A stretch of 64,000 nucleotides of DNA from Lepidodermella squamata (Eukaryota; Animalia; Gastrotricha): positions 124,001-188,000 of the forward strand of contig JBLDXI010000020.1 in the NCBI GenBank assembly GCA_047495785.1, written 5' to 3'. The position numbers and the translations under genes were made by a program. Shown here piece by piece: positions 40,245 through 50,531 of this stretch; positions within the stretch are counted from its first letter, which is position 1, and every line of letters begins with the position of its first letter. Under the pieces are notes generated by a model. That model worked only from the letters and a program-made list of their open reading frames with translations, had not been told where the DNA came from and searched no databases.

Positions 40245-41537
40245 TCAGTCTCTTCCGCTATTTTTTTGCTGCTGGGCAAGTGCGGCTTGGGTTTGACGAT
40301 AGCGCTCCTCACTGCCGGCGATTTTCCCGCCAAGTCGACCCGCGCGGTAATCCGAAATGGCTTGCTCGATTTCCTCATGAGTGTTCATTACGAATGGTCC
40401 ATAGCGAGCGACTGGTTCTCGAATCGGAAAGCCAGCCAAGAGTAATGCGTACATCACGCCTTCTCCGCCCGCTTGCAGCGTCGTCGAGGCATCAGAATTC
40501 TCGTCAATTGCGAAAACCGCCCCCTGACCCATCTTCAGATGATTTCCATCGCATTCACCTGCGCCTCGCCAGCAATAAACCATCGCGTTCATGCCTTTGG
40601 GTATTTTTAGAGTAACATTGCCTTGGCTTTCTAATCGGATATCTTGAAGTATCGTTGGGGCGTGAGTTTCGACAGGCGACTTGTGTCCTTGGAACTCGCC
40701 GGCAATTACTCTGACCACAGATTTTCCGTCAGCCAGCGTTACAGTCGGTATCTTCTTAGGAGTGATGTCTTGATAACGAGGTTCGGTCATTTTCAGCTAA
40801 AATAAAAATGAAGAAAGCTAGTGATTGATACTACAAATTGATTAGTCACTGCTTACCTTCTTCGGTAGATTCACCCAAATTTGAAAGCCTATCAGTATTG
40901 AAAATAATGACAGAAATTGCAAGAAATTTGAATTAAATCCTGGAAATCTTTACCTTCAAGATTGCCGCCGTTTTTCATGACTTCATCGCCAGGCATTTCA
41001 GCGTGAACAACACCGCGGCCCGCTGTCATCCACTGCACACCGCCTGGTTGCAGGGTTCCTCTACTGCCACTGGAATCAATATGCTGAAATGCTCCTGTCA
41101 ATTAGACGATTGTACATCGGAAATAGAAGTAAAAATTTCTAACAAACCATCGATGCAGTATGTGACAGTCTGTAAACAGTTTCACAAAGAATTAAACTCT
41201 ATCGAGCACAGAATAAGATATTTACCTGAAAACCACGATGAGGATGATCAGGGGCACCAACAGCTTCACCTGGCTTGTAACTAGTAGGTCCTGATTATGT
41301 GTGGATAATATTAATATCGAGTAACTTCATACAAGGCATTACTTACCCATATGATCCAAGAGCAAAAACGGGTCAAGTTCACTCAAAGAAGCATCTCCTA
41401 TCGGCCTGCGAACAAGGAATCCTCCTCCTATTCATATCCAACAATTAAATAGAACAGCAATAAAATAATGCTTAATCCTTACCTTCACGCATTTGCTTCG
41501 ACGTCACAATCTTCGATATTTTCCTAACAACTGACAT
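40245..41537 (-). CDS. PIR: Pirin family (cupin) protein, multi-exon
   Basis: [71 protein letters not shown]. Confidence 0.92.
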
Positions 41538-42059
41538 CGTTTCACAGCTGTCCGAGCAAGTTTCGTCAAGTTCGGCTTTAATATACTTGGCTAATATATA
41601 CATAAATTAAAAAAATCAGAATAAGTGTGCTCTGTTTTTACAGGGAGAGTTTTCAGCAAACGTTTGAGAAGTAATAACAATCACAATCAACCAAACAGGC
41701 AGGGCCATAATGTTGTAATTAATCTGTGAATTAAAGAGAGCAGTGAATTAAGCAAGCGCAAAGAATCAGGGTATATATACCATGTGTCTAGTCAGGTCGA
41801 AATTTTCAAAATTGTTCGCGCACAGAAAATTGCAGTTTGAATGTGTCTTAAGCGGTCATAGACTGAAGTACCTATTTCTGATGTGTCTTAAGCGGTCAAA
41901 AAAGGTTCGTAAGCACGGACGCGTCTCTCAGGACTTCAAAAAAATACCGCCTTTTCAAAAACAATTTATTGCAAAATACATTGAATTAATGTTTTATGAA
42001 ATTTAGGTAGTCACAATAAAATAAATGTGAAATCAAAAACCCGTGAGCGCGGGAATTGA

Positions 42060-42233
42060 GCTGTTTGATTATTCTGGAGGAGAAGTTAGCGTAGAAAGCA
42101 ATGTGCCCAGAAAGCAGCTGCTTTCCATGCAGTAAGCCGTAATGAGCGTATGCGTGGAAAACACTGCTTTCCAGGCAATTTGCCTGCTACGCACTAGCAC
42201 TGCGCTCTAGGCACTGCTTTCCAAGCAAATTTC
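42060..42233 (+). repeat. Left TIR (about 174 bp) with internal CTGCTTTCCA subrepeats
   Basis: Near-identical reverse complement of 49588-49761. Confidence 0.92.
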
Positions 42234-42731
42234 TCCCGGAGTGCTTAGAATGCATTCTTGGCTCATTTCGCGTAGTTTTGCAGGTTGAGAATTACTGTTT
42301 CTGATGTTTGGGACACTTTTCTGTTATTTTGTCTAATTTTCGTACTCACACGCTTTACTCTGTACTATCTGGGCGATAGTATTTTTGAATTATGCTATTA
42401 AATTATTATTCGAGTACATAATAGTTTGATAAGGGTGTCACGTGTGTATCCGGTACAAGGGCGGGTCGCGTGGCGATTCCTTTTGCATCAGCTGTGCAGC
42501 ACTTTTGTGGCGCGACAGTCTTGTGGTGCGTAAGCCATGCCATAAAACACAATTAGATAAGGATAACTCTCTTAAGTATACCTGGAACTACGCTGTCTTG
42601 TATTCCCTGTATGAGAACTGTTTGCCAAGTTTGAACCGCAACTCTGTACATTGTTAACGTTTATTCTCTTTTAATCCATAGGCTTTCAGTTATTCGCTTT
42701 TGTAAGCTTATTATTGAGTTGTTTTCTATCA

Positions 42732-45700
42732 ATGAGTCTCTTCGACGAGATTCGTCGTATGAACAAGAAAGTCATAAAAAAGGATGACATTATCCTCGCT
42801 ATGCCGCCAGCTTTTCATGGCGATTTGCTTCTGTTTGCTGCGGACTATTTGAAAAAATTGGAGAAGGTATGCATTGGTACATTTTACTTCCAGTCATATC
42901 TGTTTGCTATCTTATCTTATAGGAGGAAAAACAGATTTATTCCCACCCTAAGGACCACCTGTATTTCGACGAAGGAGAGGGGGGTGCTTTGAGAGCCGTT
43001 TCTTTCCGGTTAGTTGTTGATTTTGCGGTTAATTTAATTGCAAACATTTTTCTTCATCCCTAGCTGTGCTGCGGGTTTCTCCGATGAGGCGACGATTAAC
43101 CCCCGAACCCAGCTAGGTTGCAAAGCCTTCAAGCGCTTCGTCTTGGTGAAGACAGCGCAGGAGTATTTTGTGGCTATTCGTTCCGGTCCTCAGCCTCACA
43201 ATCATGGCGACAACCTGAATAACCAGGAAAGTGTGATTCGTCACCTGCGCCACGATCAGGAAACCCTCAGGGCAGTAGAAGATCTGGTATCTACGAAGCT
43301 CTCAGCCACTGAGATTTCGAAGAGATCCTGTGAAGCTGCTGTCCTGGAGAAGAACTCCATTGCCGATCGTCGCAAATGCCTTGATCAACTCGACGTATAC
43401 TCGTTCAAAAGACGAATTATGTCGTTGAAAGGTGCGCGGTAAGTGATTTTTATTTACCATGGTATCAATCAGGGACTACTTGTATGTTACAATTGATAAT
43501 AGACTGGACAAAGTTGAATTCCACAGTGTGGAAAAGCTGGTGGAAGCCGACAGGGGGAAGCAGGTTCAAGAAGTTATTCATTACACTCCCGGCGATTCTC
43601 CGTCCGGTTTTGTCTTGGCAATGATGACGCCTCTCCAGCAAGCTCTCGTTGCCAACAATGAGATTTACGAAACTGGATTTCTGGACGCGACTTTCAAGGG
43701 CGTAACAAAGCATAATTACGCTCTCTATGCCATCGCCGCCGTTCAGAAAGGAGTCGAAAAATCTTTGCCGCTTGCGTTTGCCATCTTGGAACATGACGAT
43801 GAGGCCAGTTTACGCCTATTTCTCACAGCGCTTCGCGACAAATGCATCAGTCTTAATCCTGCGTTCAAGTTTAGGCATGCCTTATCTCACTATCTTTTCA
43901 GTCAAGAATTACTGGGGTATTTTTCAGGACGATTGTCATCGATAAAGACCAGAAGGAGATCTCGCTAATCAAAGAAATTTTTGATTGTTGCGTTGTCCTG
44001 TGCTACTTCCATCTGCTTCAGGTAATTGTTCGAATACTTAAATAGGATTTTTACAATGTGGCTGTGTTATAGGCTGTAATTAGATGGCTTCATGGCGAAA
44101 AATCTGGTTGTTCCGGTCGCTCTGAGAAGGCCAAGGCGGAGCGTTGCGCTGTAATAGACCTGATAGAGACCATTCGAGCGTCTGGCAACTACGAAGAAGT
44201 GCAGAAAAAGTGGCGAGAAGGCAGCCCGAATCTGTCGCCAAAAGTCCGCACGTATCTTTGGGAATTTTGGGTTCAGGAGAAATATGCTGTGTTGTGGTGT
44301 CGCTATGCGCTCAAAAATTACCATCTTGACCAGGCTACCAATAACATTATTGAGGTGTAATTACTGATTTCGACTGAAACGACTTTATTATGTTTTCTTT
44401 TTTTTATTACGGTAGAACTTCTGGTTTTGCCTGAAATACACTTTCTTGAAGGTTTGTCCAGCTAGCTATACATCATTTTATTCATTTCTGTTATCTTGTA
44501 TCATTTCAGGGTTCTTATAACCGCCGGATAGACGATTTGGTATTTTTGCTTTCTAACGAGGTCATGTCATATTACGCGCATCTAATGAACCTCGATGCCC
44601 ACGGTCGAAAAATCTTGAAGCTGAAGCATAAGCCGGAGCAGTTGGCTACGAAGCAAGCTGACAACGACCGTTTCTGCTCTACGGTCGTCTGGGGCGATGA
44701 CCTCGTTACCGTACCGTCGTTCACGCCCAACGAATTCGACATCAAGTACGAGGTGAACCCGGCAGAGCAACGGTGTTCATGTGTCTACAGTATTCACGGA
44801 AATATATGCAAGCATTTGCATTTCGTGCGCAAGTTGAATCCGGATAAGGTAAGACTTGGTTATTTTCTTCTATAAAATAATGTTAATTTTGCGTGCGGTT
44901 CATTCAGATATCCGTTTACCGTGATCGTCTTACGAAGTCAATTGTCGACGAAGGCCTCTGCGACAAGTTGGGCGATGAGCTACGAGTGATGAGCCCAATT
45001 AGCCATCACGTCAGCCTGGTCGACCTGAAGACGATGAGATGCGACTGCATGGCGTCGAGTTATGCGCCGGATAAGGAACTTTGTTGTTGTGTTATGGCCG
45101 CTCGCCAGCTATTCCCAGGTATATTATTAAACAGTTATTCGATTTGCTGTTTTGTCATTTCATATGATTCAATTTTCAGTTGAAGCTGAGGCTGCTGACC
45201 AACTGCTAGTTCAAGCTCGTTCCACTGCGCCTAGTGTGAAAGATGCGGTTGCGGCATTTTCAAGCAACAAGGTTGCTCCGGCAACCAAAATGCCTGCAAC
45301 GACACGCAACGCTCATTTCTCGAAAACCGGAATAAAGCGCTCTGCTCCTATCGACCCGGACGAGCCAAGCTCAAGCGGCGATCATCTTGCTGATCACTGC
45401 ACGAGTGCTGACCCCCTTGCTGATCATAGAGTGAAGAAATTCAGAAGCTCTAAAAGAGGAAGACAAACGCACAACGTGATGGCGAATTTCAGACGCCAAA
45501 ACTGTCCCTCTGATGTGCCTGCTGATGTTGCCGCGCGACTTGCGTCAACGTCAAATGCACCGGAACCGGCATGCACTCCCACCTCGCGCCTCGTTGGCCT
45601 GAGTCTACCCGGTCTGCGTATTCCTGGCCCGCTGCTCGCTGGAACCGGTTTGCGTATTCCACGCCCGCCGCTCCCTGGAACCGGTCTGCGTATTCCTGGC

Positions 45701-45832
45701 CCGCTGCTCGCTGGAACCGGTTTGCGTATTCCACGCCCGCCGCTCCCTGGTGCTGGAATAGCGGTTGTTAGCCCTTCCGGTGTGGTGATTTTGCGCCCTC
45801 CGGGCGCGGCTAATACAAATAATATCAACTAA
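42732..45832 (+). CDS. MULE transposase, 10 exons, 858 aa: WRKY/FAR1-like DNA-binding domain, DDE, CxxH, two SWIM-like fingers
   Basis: Exons 42732-42866, 42923-43008, 43064-43438, 43503-43868, 43928-44021, 44073-44354, 44416-44451, 44510-44848, 44908-45118 and 45180-45832 sum to 2577 nt, in frame. Motifs: C..GCKA..HNH, FLDATF, IVIDKD, LCYFH, TNNIIENFW, NRRIDDL, CSC..CKH. Confidence 0.9.
45608..45751 (+). repeat. In-frame tandem repeat, 4 x 36 bp in ABAB order (TGLRIPGPLLAG / TGLRIPRPPLPG)
   Basis: Directly visible in the last transposase exon. Confidence 0.95.
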
Positions 45833-46618
45833 ACTTTCGCTATTAGCTCTCCGCTTAATCCTTTGTGTTTGCTCAACATCCGGCTTCTTGCATCCGCATG
45901 TGTGCGCATTGTGCGCGATGAGTGCCACTTCTTACACACTCATTAGCGATGACCGCGCGGAATTCATACTCATAGTTGACTCGAGTATAATTGAAACGAT
46001 GAATGCCTCTTTCAACTTCGACACTGTTTTTCGGTTGTAAAATGTCTTTCTATTTTGCCGCATCGTGCGTGGAAATTGTTTACTATTGTGAACAAATTGC
46101 GGCTCGAGCCCGGTTATGGTGATTAATAGATCAATAATTAAATTGTGATAACAGATAATTGCAATTCAGGCGTAATAAATTGCGGTTTTCTTGCATCCTT
46201 GTGTGACATGTCTCATACCTTACACACGTGATATGCAATTTCGTTTTTTTTTAAAGTGAAAATGATACCAAGCTTGATGAATAAACATTCCGTTTTCAGT
46301 ACACTTGTGGTTTTTTTACATAAATGACCCGATGTTCATGTTTATGGAAATATCACAGCTGACGTTTCACGCTACCCAAGTGCGTCATCCACTTGAGAGC
46401 GCGCTTCTTTTAGCGGCGGGACCAGCTCCTTATGTCGACTGGTTAATAGCAAGGCGTACAGCCTCTCATGTCAGGTGTGGGTAGCTTACCGACAAAGCGG
46501 CCTAACAGGTGTCGAAACCATGCCGATTTCAGAGTCCAAAACACGAAAACAAATTCGTATCGCATTTATTTTGCAATTTTGTAATTCACATTAAAAGTCA
46601 TCATCATTATTCATCCTT

Positions 46619-48376
46619 ATGGCTGACCGCAGGAAGGACGTTGAATGTCCCGACCTTGTCGACTCTCTTCTTCTTTTTCTGTCGCCGAACAATGGCCTGC
46701 TACGCACTTGGTCAGGACTTGCCAAACTGACATTCAAGTCGAACGCGACCACCAAGGCTGTGATTCGAGCGGCCTATTCAGGCGACTCACGTTACTACGT
46801 GCTGCTGAACGCAATCAGGTTGGCTGAGAAGAAAACTGCAAAGGAGCGCGACGACGGCTATTTCACCACCGTTACCCGAGAAGACGCTGTTAAGCCGATC
46901 AAGGTGATTGAAAGCGCTCTGAGGCTTCGCGTTCCGCTCATCAAACGCATCGATCTTCAACTGCCCAGCTTTTGCGATGATCCGCGCATGTTCAACCTGA
47001 CCGCAGAACAAACAAGGTTAGTAATATAGAAGTATACGTTTTTACAATTTTTAGGCTATTTTTGGCTATTTTTGGCGTATGTACAGCGTCTCCCAAAAAT
47101 TGCGAAAATTTTTTTAGTTTAGGTTGGTTTTAGATGGTAACTGGCTCGGTAATTTTCGGTATTTTACCCGGTTGGGCCAAATTCCTCCGGACCTTTTTAA
47201 TCCCGTAAACCCGTTAGTGGCATACTTAATTATATTCTCGTGATTTTTGGATATTTTTATAAAATTTCTGGCCGTAAGATGGGACTTCGTCTCTCATTTA
47301 TGAGTTTCTGAAGCCTTTTCCGTGCATTTTCTCCGCTTGCTGTACATATAAACTGTAGTTCCTCTTTAGCGCAAAACGAAACCTCAGAAATGTTAATAAG
47401 GTCCCTCCAATTAAGATAATTTGCCTCGTTATATTTTCAACAGAGAGTTCCTGAAATCTTTCAAGGTTCTGATCAGTCGCGGCCTACCGTCTGACGAAGT
47501 GACCAAGGGGGCTTCTAGCGTAGCGTTGCTCGTCGCCATCGATTTCATCGACAGGTCTATTGCCAGCATGTTGAACGAGCCAACGGCCATGTTGAACGAG
47601 TCCGTCGCGGTGTACGACAAGCTGGCGACCGAATTCATCGCGAAAAACAAACATCTTCTTCGCCCGAATTTGCCAATCATTCAGGGCAAGGTCAAAGTGA
47701 AGCCGCAGGCCATCGAAGAGGCTATGGCGAGCCCAGATGAAGAAATCGAATTCGATCGCCCAGGCTCAAGCGCGTCGAGCATCTCGCTTTCTTCGTTTTC
47801 CGAATCGAGCCATTCCGTTTTAGACCTGGAAGACGATGTCGATGTACTGAACCAACTGGCCGGCAATTCCGCTGACCAAACGATCGTCGCTGCTCCTCCT
47901 AATGAACGACCAGACAGCAGCGTCAGTAATGCCTCGCGAAAACGCCAACTGTCATCAGCCACGACCTCTTCAACCTTGCCGTCTTCGTCTTCTTCTACAC
48001 CAATTGACAACGAGCCAGTCATACCTGAAACTGCAAGCGACGCTTCAGAATCTAAAAAGGTAATATCCATCAACTGTGTTGCAGCTTTTCCTAAATGATT
48101 ACCTTACTTACCTAGATTCGAGTGGACGAGACGAAGCTGTGGCGGCACATCTTCACGCCGAATCCACAAGACCATCGCTTTCTCGACTTGACGCACCAAT
48201 TCCCGCTCAATTGGCCGGCCGAAAATGTGCAGCTGCCACCCGAAGTCCAGGCTTTCAGCGACATGGTCTCGAATGGCGCGCAACCTGAACACGCAGCAAT
48301 GCTCTGTTATAGAGGTTCTGAATTCTCTTGTGAAATCATTCACCATACAATTGATGCAATTGAAATAACTGTTTGA
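46619..48376 (+). CDS. Transposon-borne accessory protein of unknown function, 3 exons, 424 aa
   Basis: Exons 46619-47016, 47444-48059 and 48116-48376 are joined by phase-compatible GT-AG introns (1275 nt including stop); AATAAA at about 48528. Confidence 0.75.
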
Positions 48377-49587
48377 ACAACTAATCGATTTTCATTCGCT
48401 ATTTCTTGTTTTCGACAGTTTCCGCTATCCTGCTTGGTTAATTAATTGATAGCTTGTGTTACGATGAATTTGTAGTTGAGACAGCATTGCAGTTTGCTAA
48501 TTGACAGGCTTGAGCGCTCAATTTTATAATAAAACGTTTCCAATCAGCATATTTCTTTTCCGTCGCTCTATAAAGGAGCCCTAAAAAGGCAGAATTCGTA
48601 AGTAACACGAAACATTTAGACAGACAGAAAGACTGTGAGAGGTAACAGAAAAGTTGAACTCAACTTTTTTGATGATTTTACGATGGGCGTCTAATCGAGA
48701 CGAATCACACATAGGCGGTGAGGCGCCCCGACCGTTTTTAATTGCTAAACGTCGCGAGACAAATTGTAAAATAAATCAGTATATCAGGGTGTCAGTTTAC
48801 ACCAGCTGTCAGATGACGTGGGACACCTCGATGTTTGCACGAGTGCGGTGACATTACTTCAATTAACCAGCCCGAGATGAGCTGGTCTCTTGTCTGTTAG
48901 TTGCATGTCGCAACTGTTTTTTTATTCCAGTGTAAAAAAATTCCTAATCCTGCCTTCTATGATAGGATAAAGGTCGGAGAAAGTAGAAAATTTCAATTAT
49001 TTCAATCTTGGATGGGATAAAAATCAAGATTAAAAAAAATTGCTACCCTGTTGCATTCGAACTTCCATAGAACGCGCACCGATGTGCGCGACCAGGATCA
49101 GGATCAGGAATTACGATTTCTCCTCGCCCTGACGGACTCAAGCTTTCGCCATACGGCGGAGCTGGTGAGACAATTGCGACCTCACGCTCCAGGAAAGTTT
49201 GGTCTGGTTTACTGACTACTTAATGAATTTCCTACCCCTGGTACCCCAGTTACTGCTGACTGTTTCTCCAGGGCCAAGGCATTAGTGCCCAGTAAATGTT
49301 CACTTGTTTCACGGTGGCAAATGGCAAAAATACGCGTTCCTCCTGAAGTAATGCGTTACTCAAAAAAAAGTAAAGTAATTCGCTATTTTGGCTTAAGTAA
49401 CGCCTAAACACCTAATAATCACTTGATGGATGACCTAACGGCTAAGCATGGGGTCAAGGTCTAAAGAAAATAACAGTCATAATGAAGCGTTTGAAAAACC
49501 TCACAAATGGTGTTTCAATAATATAACTATATTTTGGAATGTAAACCAACAGAATGGCGGTAAAAACGCTTAGAAAGCAGCGCTGGC

Positions 49588-49761
49588 GAAATTTGCTTGG
49601 AAAGCAGTGCCCGGAGAGCAAAGTGTGTGCGTAGCAGGCAAATTGCCTGGAAAGCAGTGTTTTCCACGCATACGCTCATTACGGCTTACTGCATGGAAAG
49701 CAGCTGCTTTCTGGGCGCACTGCTTTCCATGCTAACTTCTCCTCCAGAATAATCAAACGGC
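49588..49761 (-). repeat. Right TIR (about 174 bp)
   Basis: gaaatttgcttggaaagcagtgc...cctccagaataatcaaacggc is the reverse complement of the left TIR. Confidence 0.92.
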
Positions 49762-50531
49762 GGAATTGATATGTTCTGCGCTTTCCGCTGTCCGATTTTG
49801 AGAAGTGACGAGAGCCAGAGAGAAAGAGAGGACCCATCGAGATACACACCTGCATCGGGCGCGCAAATCGCAAACGGTGCACGCCAGTTCTGTCGATGGT
49901 TCAAGGTCCACCATCCTTTTCTCACTCTCGTTATCTTGTGATTCCCGATTTCGGTCGCAACCTGTTAAGAGTGAAGCTTATTTCTCGCATGCAGAAGTTC
50001 CTGGCAAAAGTAATACAGACAAACCGCCGGTTTTTGGATCACGTTTAACGTAGTCTTTTTAACGTGCTACTTCCGCAAATCTTTACGATCTAATGCCGAG
50101 GCATGGTCGATTCCTTATCGTCATCTCGAATTAACAATTCCTCAACATTCACTTTGCCCTAGGGGCTTTAGCTTTGCCATTAGAACAGCCAAATTATGGA
50201 ACCTTTTACCTGCCTCTATCACTAACATTACTTCGATGAATCTTTTTGTTAACTCGTGCAAAAAATTTATATTGGGAGAATGGCCTGTCCTTACAAATTT
50301 GGCCTTAGCTAAATAAAACTAATTATTATTTTTAATCACCTTATCTAATGTATGCGTGCCTTGTGCGCATCATCCTATAATAATCATTCTAATATGCTGT
50401 GTACGGTCGCCTTACTTCTGCGCTCGGTCGCCTTTCTAATCCTATTGTTTTAGTTATATGATATTATTATTTCGAGCCTATTGCTTTCAATGTAGAGCTT
50501 TTTTTTACATTGATCGTCCGAGCTGTTAATA

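Follow-up and report, generated by a model that had tools for sequence, protein, structure and literature searches.

Two-gene Mutator-like elements (MULEs) are known in plants and yeast, and a 2019 survey of the superfamily tabulates second open reading frames (ORFs) for some animal and filozoan groups (PMC6446971). The second gene of the maize element MuDR, mudrB, is apparently required for integration (PMC6446971), and the VANC proteins of Arabidopsis VANDAL elements are described as binding non-coding regions of their own elements (PMC5735166, PMC10398659). Among the tabulated groups, the aphid Spectre elements have a C2H2 second ORF and the filozoan MULE-Co an unknown one; the Phantom group is entered with '1 or 2' ORFs, the table being silent on the nature of the second (PMC6446971). 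Accessory genes of cut-and-paste transposons are few, the studied MULE cases that are cited (mudrB, vanC, mutB) come from plants and yeast, and the second ORFs of animal MULEs have so far been tabulated without evidence that they matter. Here we describe a Mutator element with a second gene, ORF2, in a 64,000-nucleotide stretch of the genome of the gastrotrich Lepidodermella squamata (contig JBLDXI010000020.1, positions 124,001 to 188,000; the window). A first-pass annotation of this DNA had noticed the gene and set it against animal MULEs that carry only a transposase, a contrast that the entries for Phantom, Spectre and MULE-Co show to be overstated (PMC6446971). We find that ORF2 is a real, selected, element-borne gene and not an artefact, and we hold with moderate confidence that it is a lineage-specific accessory gene maintained for the propagation of the element itself.

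The element spans positions 42060-49761 of the window, to which all coordinates refer unless another locus is named. Our searches covered 121 Mb of genome in 151 contigs and found four further full-length copies, which together with the window element form family A. A diverged sister element, family B, lies on a different contig from the window (C17; locus L027, 551-7791). ORF2 is co-oriented with the transposase gene and is located between it and the right end of the element. Its gene model, read base by base on the forward strand, starts with an ATG at 46619 and comprises exon 1 (46619-47016; residues 1-132 and two bases of codon 133), a phase 2 intron (47017-47443) with its donor GT at 47017, exon 2 (47444-48059), whose first base completes the split AG/A arginine codon, a 56-bp phase 0 intron (48060-48115) and exon 3 (48116-48376), which encodes 86 residues and ends with the TGA at 48374-48376. 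Both introns have GT..AG borders, the product adds up to 132 + 1 + 205 + 86 = 424 residues, and an AATAAA follows about 150 bp past the stop on the same strand (48528-48533). Family B keeps the order of end, transposase, ORF2 and end. Its ORF2 encodes 422 residues in three open exons (L027 4788-5185, 5679-6300 and 6361-6609). The ATG is retained, the two GT..AG introns match those of family A in position and phase (the second is 60 bp long), and an AATAAA lies about 165 bp past the stop. The first-pass proposal of an intact, independent, co-oriented three-exon gene with phase-compatible introns and its own AATAAA is thus borne out by the base-by-base model, the five copies and the sister element.

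The ORF2 protein is 100% identical in all five family A copies, so that the gene is neither absent nor decaying in them. Between families A and B, the proportion of differing synonymous sites (pS) in ORF2 is 0.708, which is saturated, and that of nonsynonymous sites (pN) is 0.250, giving a ratio of nonsynonymous to synonymous substitution rates (dN/dS) of about 0.14 (Fisher test of synonymous against nonsynonymous changes, p = 2e-44). Exon 1 alone gives a dN/dS of 0.11, and exon 3 one of 0.17. The transposase gives nearly the same values (pS 0.708, pN 0.216, dN/dS about 0.12). The equal pS indicates that both genes have been inherited together since before the two families split, and the equal constraint that ORF2 matters to the lineage as much as the transposase does. 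ORF2 was therefore present in the common ancestor of A and B, and purifying selection has acted on it as strongly as on the transposase. In a global alignment of the two elements, the introns and the 3' region are only about 30-48% identical, and the ORF2 exons stand out from this background in the same way as those of the transposase. At the amino acid level, identity between A and B is 79% in exon 1, 57% in exon 2 (64% over its first 105 residues) and 41% in exon 3; no other protein segment of the element is as well conserved as exon 1. The evidence is unusually clean for an accessory gene: the element is young and present in few copies, every copy is intact, and a saturated sister is as constrained in ORF2 as in its transposase.

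The limits of the element are well defined. Homology of the window element to the other four family A copies starts at 42060 and stops at 49761, which sets its length at 7,702 bp. The inverted ends are about 220 bp long, with a left terminal inverted repeat at 42060-42278 (forward strand; tip GCTGTTTGATTATTCTGGAG) and a right one at 49543-49761 (reverse strand), the latter delimited by inverted-repeat pairing, the end of homology and the target duplication. The inverted-repeat pair as detected, 42054-42278 / 49543-49767, measures 225 nt and is 84% complementary. The left arm contains three sub-repeats of the sequence GCTTTCCA and the right arm four (3+1 by strand), while the rest of the element has none. 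The 8-bp target-site duplication GGAATTGA flanks the element at 42052-42059 and, identically, at 49762-49769. All five family A copies have such perfect 8-bp duplications, each different (GGAATTGA, ACGCAAGC, TGAAATAT, TTAAAAAA and GCTGACTT), and thus represent independent insertions and not segmental duplicates. In each of these five insertions ORF2 has moved with the element, always beside the transposase, which supports its proposed accessory role. Two pairs of copies are 100% identical along the whole 7.7 kb at different sites, and the two subgroups of family A are only about 1.1% apart, from which it follows that the family moved very recently. Family A is young, low in copy number and probably still mobile.

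A search of the genome with the end repeats returned the five family A copies, the family B copy, one 714-bp derivative, one remnant and nothing more. The derivative (G000:C20:1067092-1067805) consists of two inverted end repeats that are 76% identical to the family A ends, and is probably a miniature non-autonomous member of a related family. Two stretches of the window element are themselves repetitive. Intron 1 of ORF2 contains a 217-bp fragment (47133-47349) of an unrelated dispersed repeat. The genome holds more than 35 copies of this repeat, about 80% identical to the fragment; these run further on both sides, and their homology to 47133-47349 has sharp shared boundaries. About 126 bp of the same repeat are found in intron 1 of family B (L027 5224-5349) at about 78% identity, the rest of that intron being unalignable. 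In the non-conserved 3' region, the 200 bp at 49093-49292 are 90% identical to DNA outside another copy (L021 50-250); this is another dispersed repeat, nested in the element or captured by it. About 1 kb to the left of the element, on the reverse strand, lie exons recognised by eye that we take to belong to a pirin-like gene (40245-41101), including a 181-residue ORF at 40245-40790.

The transposase gene (42699-45832, forward strand) has about ten exons separated by introns of 45-65 bp, which we placed from alignments of A with B, the coding blocks being in frame with family B. It encodes a predicted MULE catalytic domain, a predicted SWIM zinc finger and a basic, proline-rich tail. The Pfam MULE profile (PF10551) is split by an intron into two collinear matches, profile positions 4-56 at 19.4 bits and, in the next exon, positions 66-98 at 14.1 bits; each is below the cut-off of 27.6 bits and their sum is above it. 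The SWIM finger (PF04434) scores 13.7-14.7 bits in families A and B, under its cut-off of 19.6 bits, with the CxC...CxH pattern visible (CSCVYSIHGNICKH). The family B transposase shows the same split MULE and SWIM pattern and additionally matches the ZSWIM1-3 RNaseH-like domain at 24.7 bits. For assignment to Mutator we considered the MULE domain, a target duplication of 8-11 bp, long inverted ends with sub-repeats and the SWIM finger, which is common in the superfamily but not universal. The arms of about 220 nt carry the GCTTTCCA units, and the duplications are a perfect 8 bp in five of five family A copies and in both copies of a third family, C, described below. Although each domain piece is under its cut-off, the assignment of the family A element to the Mutator superfamily is sound when these pieces are combined with its long ends and 8-bp duplications. 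A word search with the MULE exon and a scan of virus contigs with the transposase profile each returned zero matches.

The transposase reading frame is uninterrupted in all five family A copies, with zero frame-breaking indels and only in-frame length changes of 9 bp and 72 bp. The 72-bp change reflects copy number in a minisatellite that Tandem Repeats Finder located in the last exon (45609-45750, forward strand; 3.9 units of 36 bp), which encodes GLRIP(G/R)P(L/P)L repeats in GLRIPGPLLAGT/GLRIPRPPLPGT units. After the transposase stop, a non-coding block on the forward strand (45840-46205) ends in an AATAAA (46174-46179) and is 71-86% identical between A and B, compared to about 30-48% for neutral DNA. 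It has no RNA-structure signal (z = 0.13), and Rfam gave no match over the window; the block is probably the 3' untranslated region (UTR) of the transposase, a cis element, or both. In the last transposase exon, positions 45460-45559 are 93% identical in nucleotide sequence between A and B, even though neutral DNA is saturated. Both islands of identity may be cis-regulatory elements, a platform for protein binding, or the result of recent gene conversion.

Homology searches and fold predictions for ORF2 were run exon by exon. The exon 1 product is basic, with an isoelectric point (pI) of 9.4. Exon 2 first completes the ordered N-terminal region, of which it encodes the latter half, and then specifies a linker of about 100 residues that is rich in serine, threonine and acidic residues (34% Ser+Thr, pI 4.2), in which RPGSSASS.SLSS and SRKR are conserved. 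A block of exon 2 that is invariant between A and B, KNKHLLRPNLP.IQGKVKVKPQ, resembles a bipartite nuclear-localisation signal in its sequence. The motifs quoted in the first-pass annotation (SSASSISLSSFSESS, DLEDD, RKRQ, KLWRHIF and FPLNWP) are all present in the protein, and its remark that no domain can be recognised is supported by the following searches. Pfam gave zero matches for each exon at E-values up to 10, including to PMD, Peptidase_C48/Ulp1 and Myb/SANT, and sequence profiles of the PDB gave zero matches for the three parts. Word searches with exon 1 (against proteins of 73-231 residues) and exon 2 (113-359 residues) were blank, a 424-residue product being outside these ranges; the same was true of the ESM Atlas searched by features and of metagenome scans with profiles of exons 1 and 2, and of a virus-contig scan with the ORF2 profiles.

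When 1.84 billion proteins were searched with a profile of exon 1, the only matches were two bacterial STAND-WD40 proteins, each matching a single 34-residue stretch (residues 28-61) 6-10 times. We did not accept these matches because the summed score is inflated by the repeats and the Pfam WD40 profile gives no match; a WD40 identity was accordingly rejected, with one 34-residue unit only and PF00400 absent even at E = 10. Structure prediction for exon 1 alone was unusable, with a predicted local distance difference test score (pLDDT) of 38. The AlphaFold2 model of exon 3 has a mean pLDDT of 70.8 (five models, 45 to 71) and a predicted template-modelling score (pTM) of 0.61, with a beta-beta-alpha-alpha-beta-beta order of elements. 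Foldseek found no match to it in the PDB at E-values up to 0.001, a wide VIA-align search reached a best Z of 3.6, and the Atlas searched by shape gave template-modelling (TM) scores below 0.5 by query, so that neither offered a convincing neighbour. A complex prediction for the C-terminal exon of the transposase with the C-terminal domain of ORF2 scored 0.00, which is evidence neither for nor against binding. ORF2 would add a protein family without known relatives.

We propose that ORF2 serves the propagation of its own element. Its transcription would start at an internal promoter immediately before the ATG, and the transcript would lose two introns and be polyadenylated at the gene's own AATAAA. 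The predicted product would begin with about 235 residues that are basic and mainly helical, continue with a flexible Ser/Thr-acidic linker and end in a small alpha/beta C-terminal domain. It may enter the nucleus via the KNKH-x12-KVKVK block, the SRKR motif or both, and act in trans on other members of the family. Its likeliest role would be that of a cofactor that binds the transposase, element DNA (either the GCTTTCCA sub-repeats or the conserved non-coding block inside the element) or both; such binding would raise expression or transposition of the element, as MURB, MutB, VANC and the Harbinger Myb-like protein do. The specific mode of action is a guess. By analogy, ORF2 may promote the reaction itself, like MURB, or expression and escape from silencing, like VANC, and our data do not separate the two.

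Variation among the family A copies also speaks for a selected gene: ORF2 has one synonymous change in 1,275 coding bp, whereas the transposase exons have 39 over about 2,750 bp (Fisher p = 8e-6) and the neighbouring introns and intergenic DNA have 7 over 1,269 bp (p = 0.04). Several observations weigh against this proposal. The low divergence among copies spans the whole block 45833-48376, non-coding DNA included, so that recombination between the subgroups of family A may contribute to it and not selection alone. The test for selection compares two diverged lineages, A and B, both from one genome. The gene is known from genomic sequence alone, its transcript, splicing and protein being predictions, and the exon-wise searches found no homologue, domain or confident fold, which leaves the mechanism without direct support. 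Finally, the family B copy has two open genes but can probably no longer move, because its left tip is damaged and no target duplication can be recognised around it: at L027 546-560 (G000:C17:3841545-3841559) the terminal GCCGT is missing and a local partial duplication is present (TGATTTTTC TTGATTTTTCTG).

MULEs are known for capturing host sequences, and Pack-TIR elements occur in animals (PMC6446971, PMC8277862). ORF2 may accordingly have originated from a host or foreign gene and be carried along without serving transposition, its conservation being otherwise caused or only apparent; the source would be a gene now lost, or another organism, before the split of A and B. The 34-residue stretch of exon 1 that resembles one WD40 unit could be a relic of such a fragment, but the likeness is inflated by the summing of ten near-identical units, and Pfam remains blank. 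We searched the whole genome with hidden Markov models (HMMs) of the three ORF2 parts and recovered only the six element copies and some decayed pieces of exon 2. Two of these pieces adjoin pieces of the family's transposase and one adjoins an end-repeat remnant; they look like the remains of broken elements and not like host genes. There is thus no parent or paralogue of ORF2 outside the element family in this 121-Mb genome, and no homologue that is an ordinary host gene. Capture with a parent copy in this genome was rejected on these grounds, as was membership in the non-autonomous Pack-MULE/Pack-TIR class, whose members carry host gene fragments, since an uninterrupted transposase gene is present in five of five copies. 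Useless cargo would be expected to decay or vanish, yet ORF2 is intact in all full-length copies, predates the split of A and B, and is as constrained as the transposase. An idle captured gene is therefore an unlikely explanation, and even if ORF2 was captured from a lost or foreign gene before that split, it has since been kept by selection.

A functional alternative is that ORF2 is an analogue of VANC that would attach to its family's non-coding DNA and lift host silencing, and not a partner in the cut-and-paste reaction. The basic exon 1, the low copy number and recent activity of the family, and the unusual conservation (71-86%) of the non-coding block between the two genes, as for a protein-binding platform, are consistent with this reading, as is the binding of VANC proteins to their own elements described above. 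On the other hand, our searches found neither similarity to known proteins nor a DNA-binding motif, and the targets of VANC are described as being in an arms race (PMC5735166, PMC10398659), whereas the block here is conserved. Nothing sets an anti-silencing factor apart from a transposition cofactor, and we consider the former, taken by itself, quite improbable.

A more specific variant of this idea involves the third MULE family of the same genome. Family C is represented by L031 1823-7204 (G000:C15:126322-131703) and L032 1841-7680, the latter broken by a 476-bp insertion, and has 128-nt ends and 8-bp duplications. It shares the GCC...GGC tips of family A, and its transposase is 31-48% identical to that of A in the aligned core exons, and a single upstream exon reaches 23%. 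A co-oriented orphan ORF of 328 residues (L031 5749-6735) lies between the family C transposase and the right end. Its layout is like that of ORF2, as an ordered N-terminal part is followed by a linker rich in Ser and by about 85 residues of tail, but it is without introns. A comparison of the ORF2 parts with this ORF in hhalign detected no similarity (probability <1%). The family C ORF may be a very diverged, fast-evolving homologue of ORF2 or an independent acquisition. It would be a long shot that ORF2 is the first animal factor of the VANC or MURB type, a sequence-specific binder of its own internal block and/or of GCTTTCCA that activates its family or protects it from silencing, in which case the family C ORF would be a variant of other specificity that co-evolves rapidly within the same system.

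Only 787 bp separate ORF2 from the transposase gene, with which it is co-oriented, and an in-frame AG lies 21 nt before the ATG of ORF2. The transposase transcript could thus use the ORF2 exons as alternative 3' exons, in the manner of TnpA and TnpD of CACTA elements, or ORF2 could be joined to the transposase in a read-through or fusion isoform. However, the stop codon of the transposase and the AATAAA downstream of it, both upstream of ORF2, are kept in families A and B, the region 46210-46460 cannot be aligned between them, and coding-type conservation begins exactly at the ATG. The sequence just before the ATG differs between A and B, so that the candidate acceptor is not conserved. Further upstream, a putative promoter and 5' UTR (46468-46618, forward strand) with the motifs TACCGACAAAG, CAGGTG and GTATCGCATTTATTT shows about 62% identity between A and B with conserved blocks. 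The conserved stop and AATAAA, the unalignable stretch and the motifs before the ATG favour ORF2 as an independent gene with an internal promoter, as predicted from the sequence, and make an isoform of the transposase very unlikely. It is scarcely credible that ORF2 is part of a different mobile element with its own ends that inserted into the MULE: the 16-nt inverted pair bracketing the gene (46564-46579 / 48761-48776) is short and AT-rich with its right arm in DNA not conserved with family B, no terminal repeats or target duplications flanking ORF2 were found, family B holds the gene in the same slot, and all copies of ORF2 segments keep family remnants apart from one decayed, B-like exon 2 fragment on contig C42 with no recognisable element DNA around it. 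Nesting, like capture from a parent in this genome, was rejected because the genomic hits are element remains and no bracketing ends exist.

With the accessory-gene reading preferred, the known systems with which ORF2 can be compared are those of MuDR, VANDAL, Mutyl and Phantom, which we liken to it by their descriptions and not by sequence comparison, and that of PIF/Harbinger. In the maize element, transcription of mudrA and of mudrB starts at opposite ends and converges. Like MuDR, family A is a Mutator element with long inverted ends and a second, domain-less, lineage-restricted gene beside the transposase. In contrast to MuDR, its second gene is co-oriented with the transposase, seemingly has an internal promoter, and resides in an animal. 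PIF/Harbinger elements are cut-and-paste transposons that occur in animals and whose transposition needs a second element-encoded protein, a nuclear Myb-like DNA-binding protein. They provide a working model for ORF2, but belong to a different superfamily, and Pfam found no Myb/SANT match in ORF2.

The Arabidopsis VANDAL/Hiun elements (vanA, vanB, vanC) resemble family A in being MULEs whose accessory genes evolve fast and cannot be placed in any recognisable family. They have two accessory genes compared to one here, and the non-coding block of family A is conserved and not rapidly changing. The VANDAL/Hiun accessory protein acts on the non-coding DNA of its own family, and ORF2 may do likewise.

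Among the tabulated MULE groups, family A can be compared with Phantom (group 20, including Muta1), for which the table gives target duplications of 8-10 bp, ends of 18-613 bp, a SWIM finger, a minisatellite where the transposase ORF ends, and invertebrate hosts (PMC6446971). Family A agrees with this entry in its 8-bp duplication, its ends of about 220 bp, its predicted SWIM finger, its minisatellite at the 3' end of the transposase and its second ORF. The Phantom minisatellite is located after the ORF, that of family A inside the coding tail. Family A thus resembles the Phantom group by tabulated features and not by phylogeny. At 7.7 kb, with two genes and defined ends, the element offers a tractable system for a direct test of a transposon-encoded helper in an animal; for Muta1, a heterologous assay in yeast has been described (PMC5225508). 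The first-pass annotation had suggested a new two-component system; the kind of architecture was known already, as second ORFs are tabulated for animal MULE groups (PMC6446971), and the novelty lies in an unrelated accessory gene that an animal MULE carries and that shows clear evidence of long-term selection.

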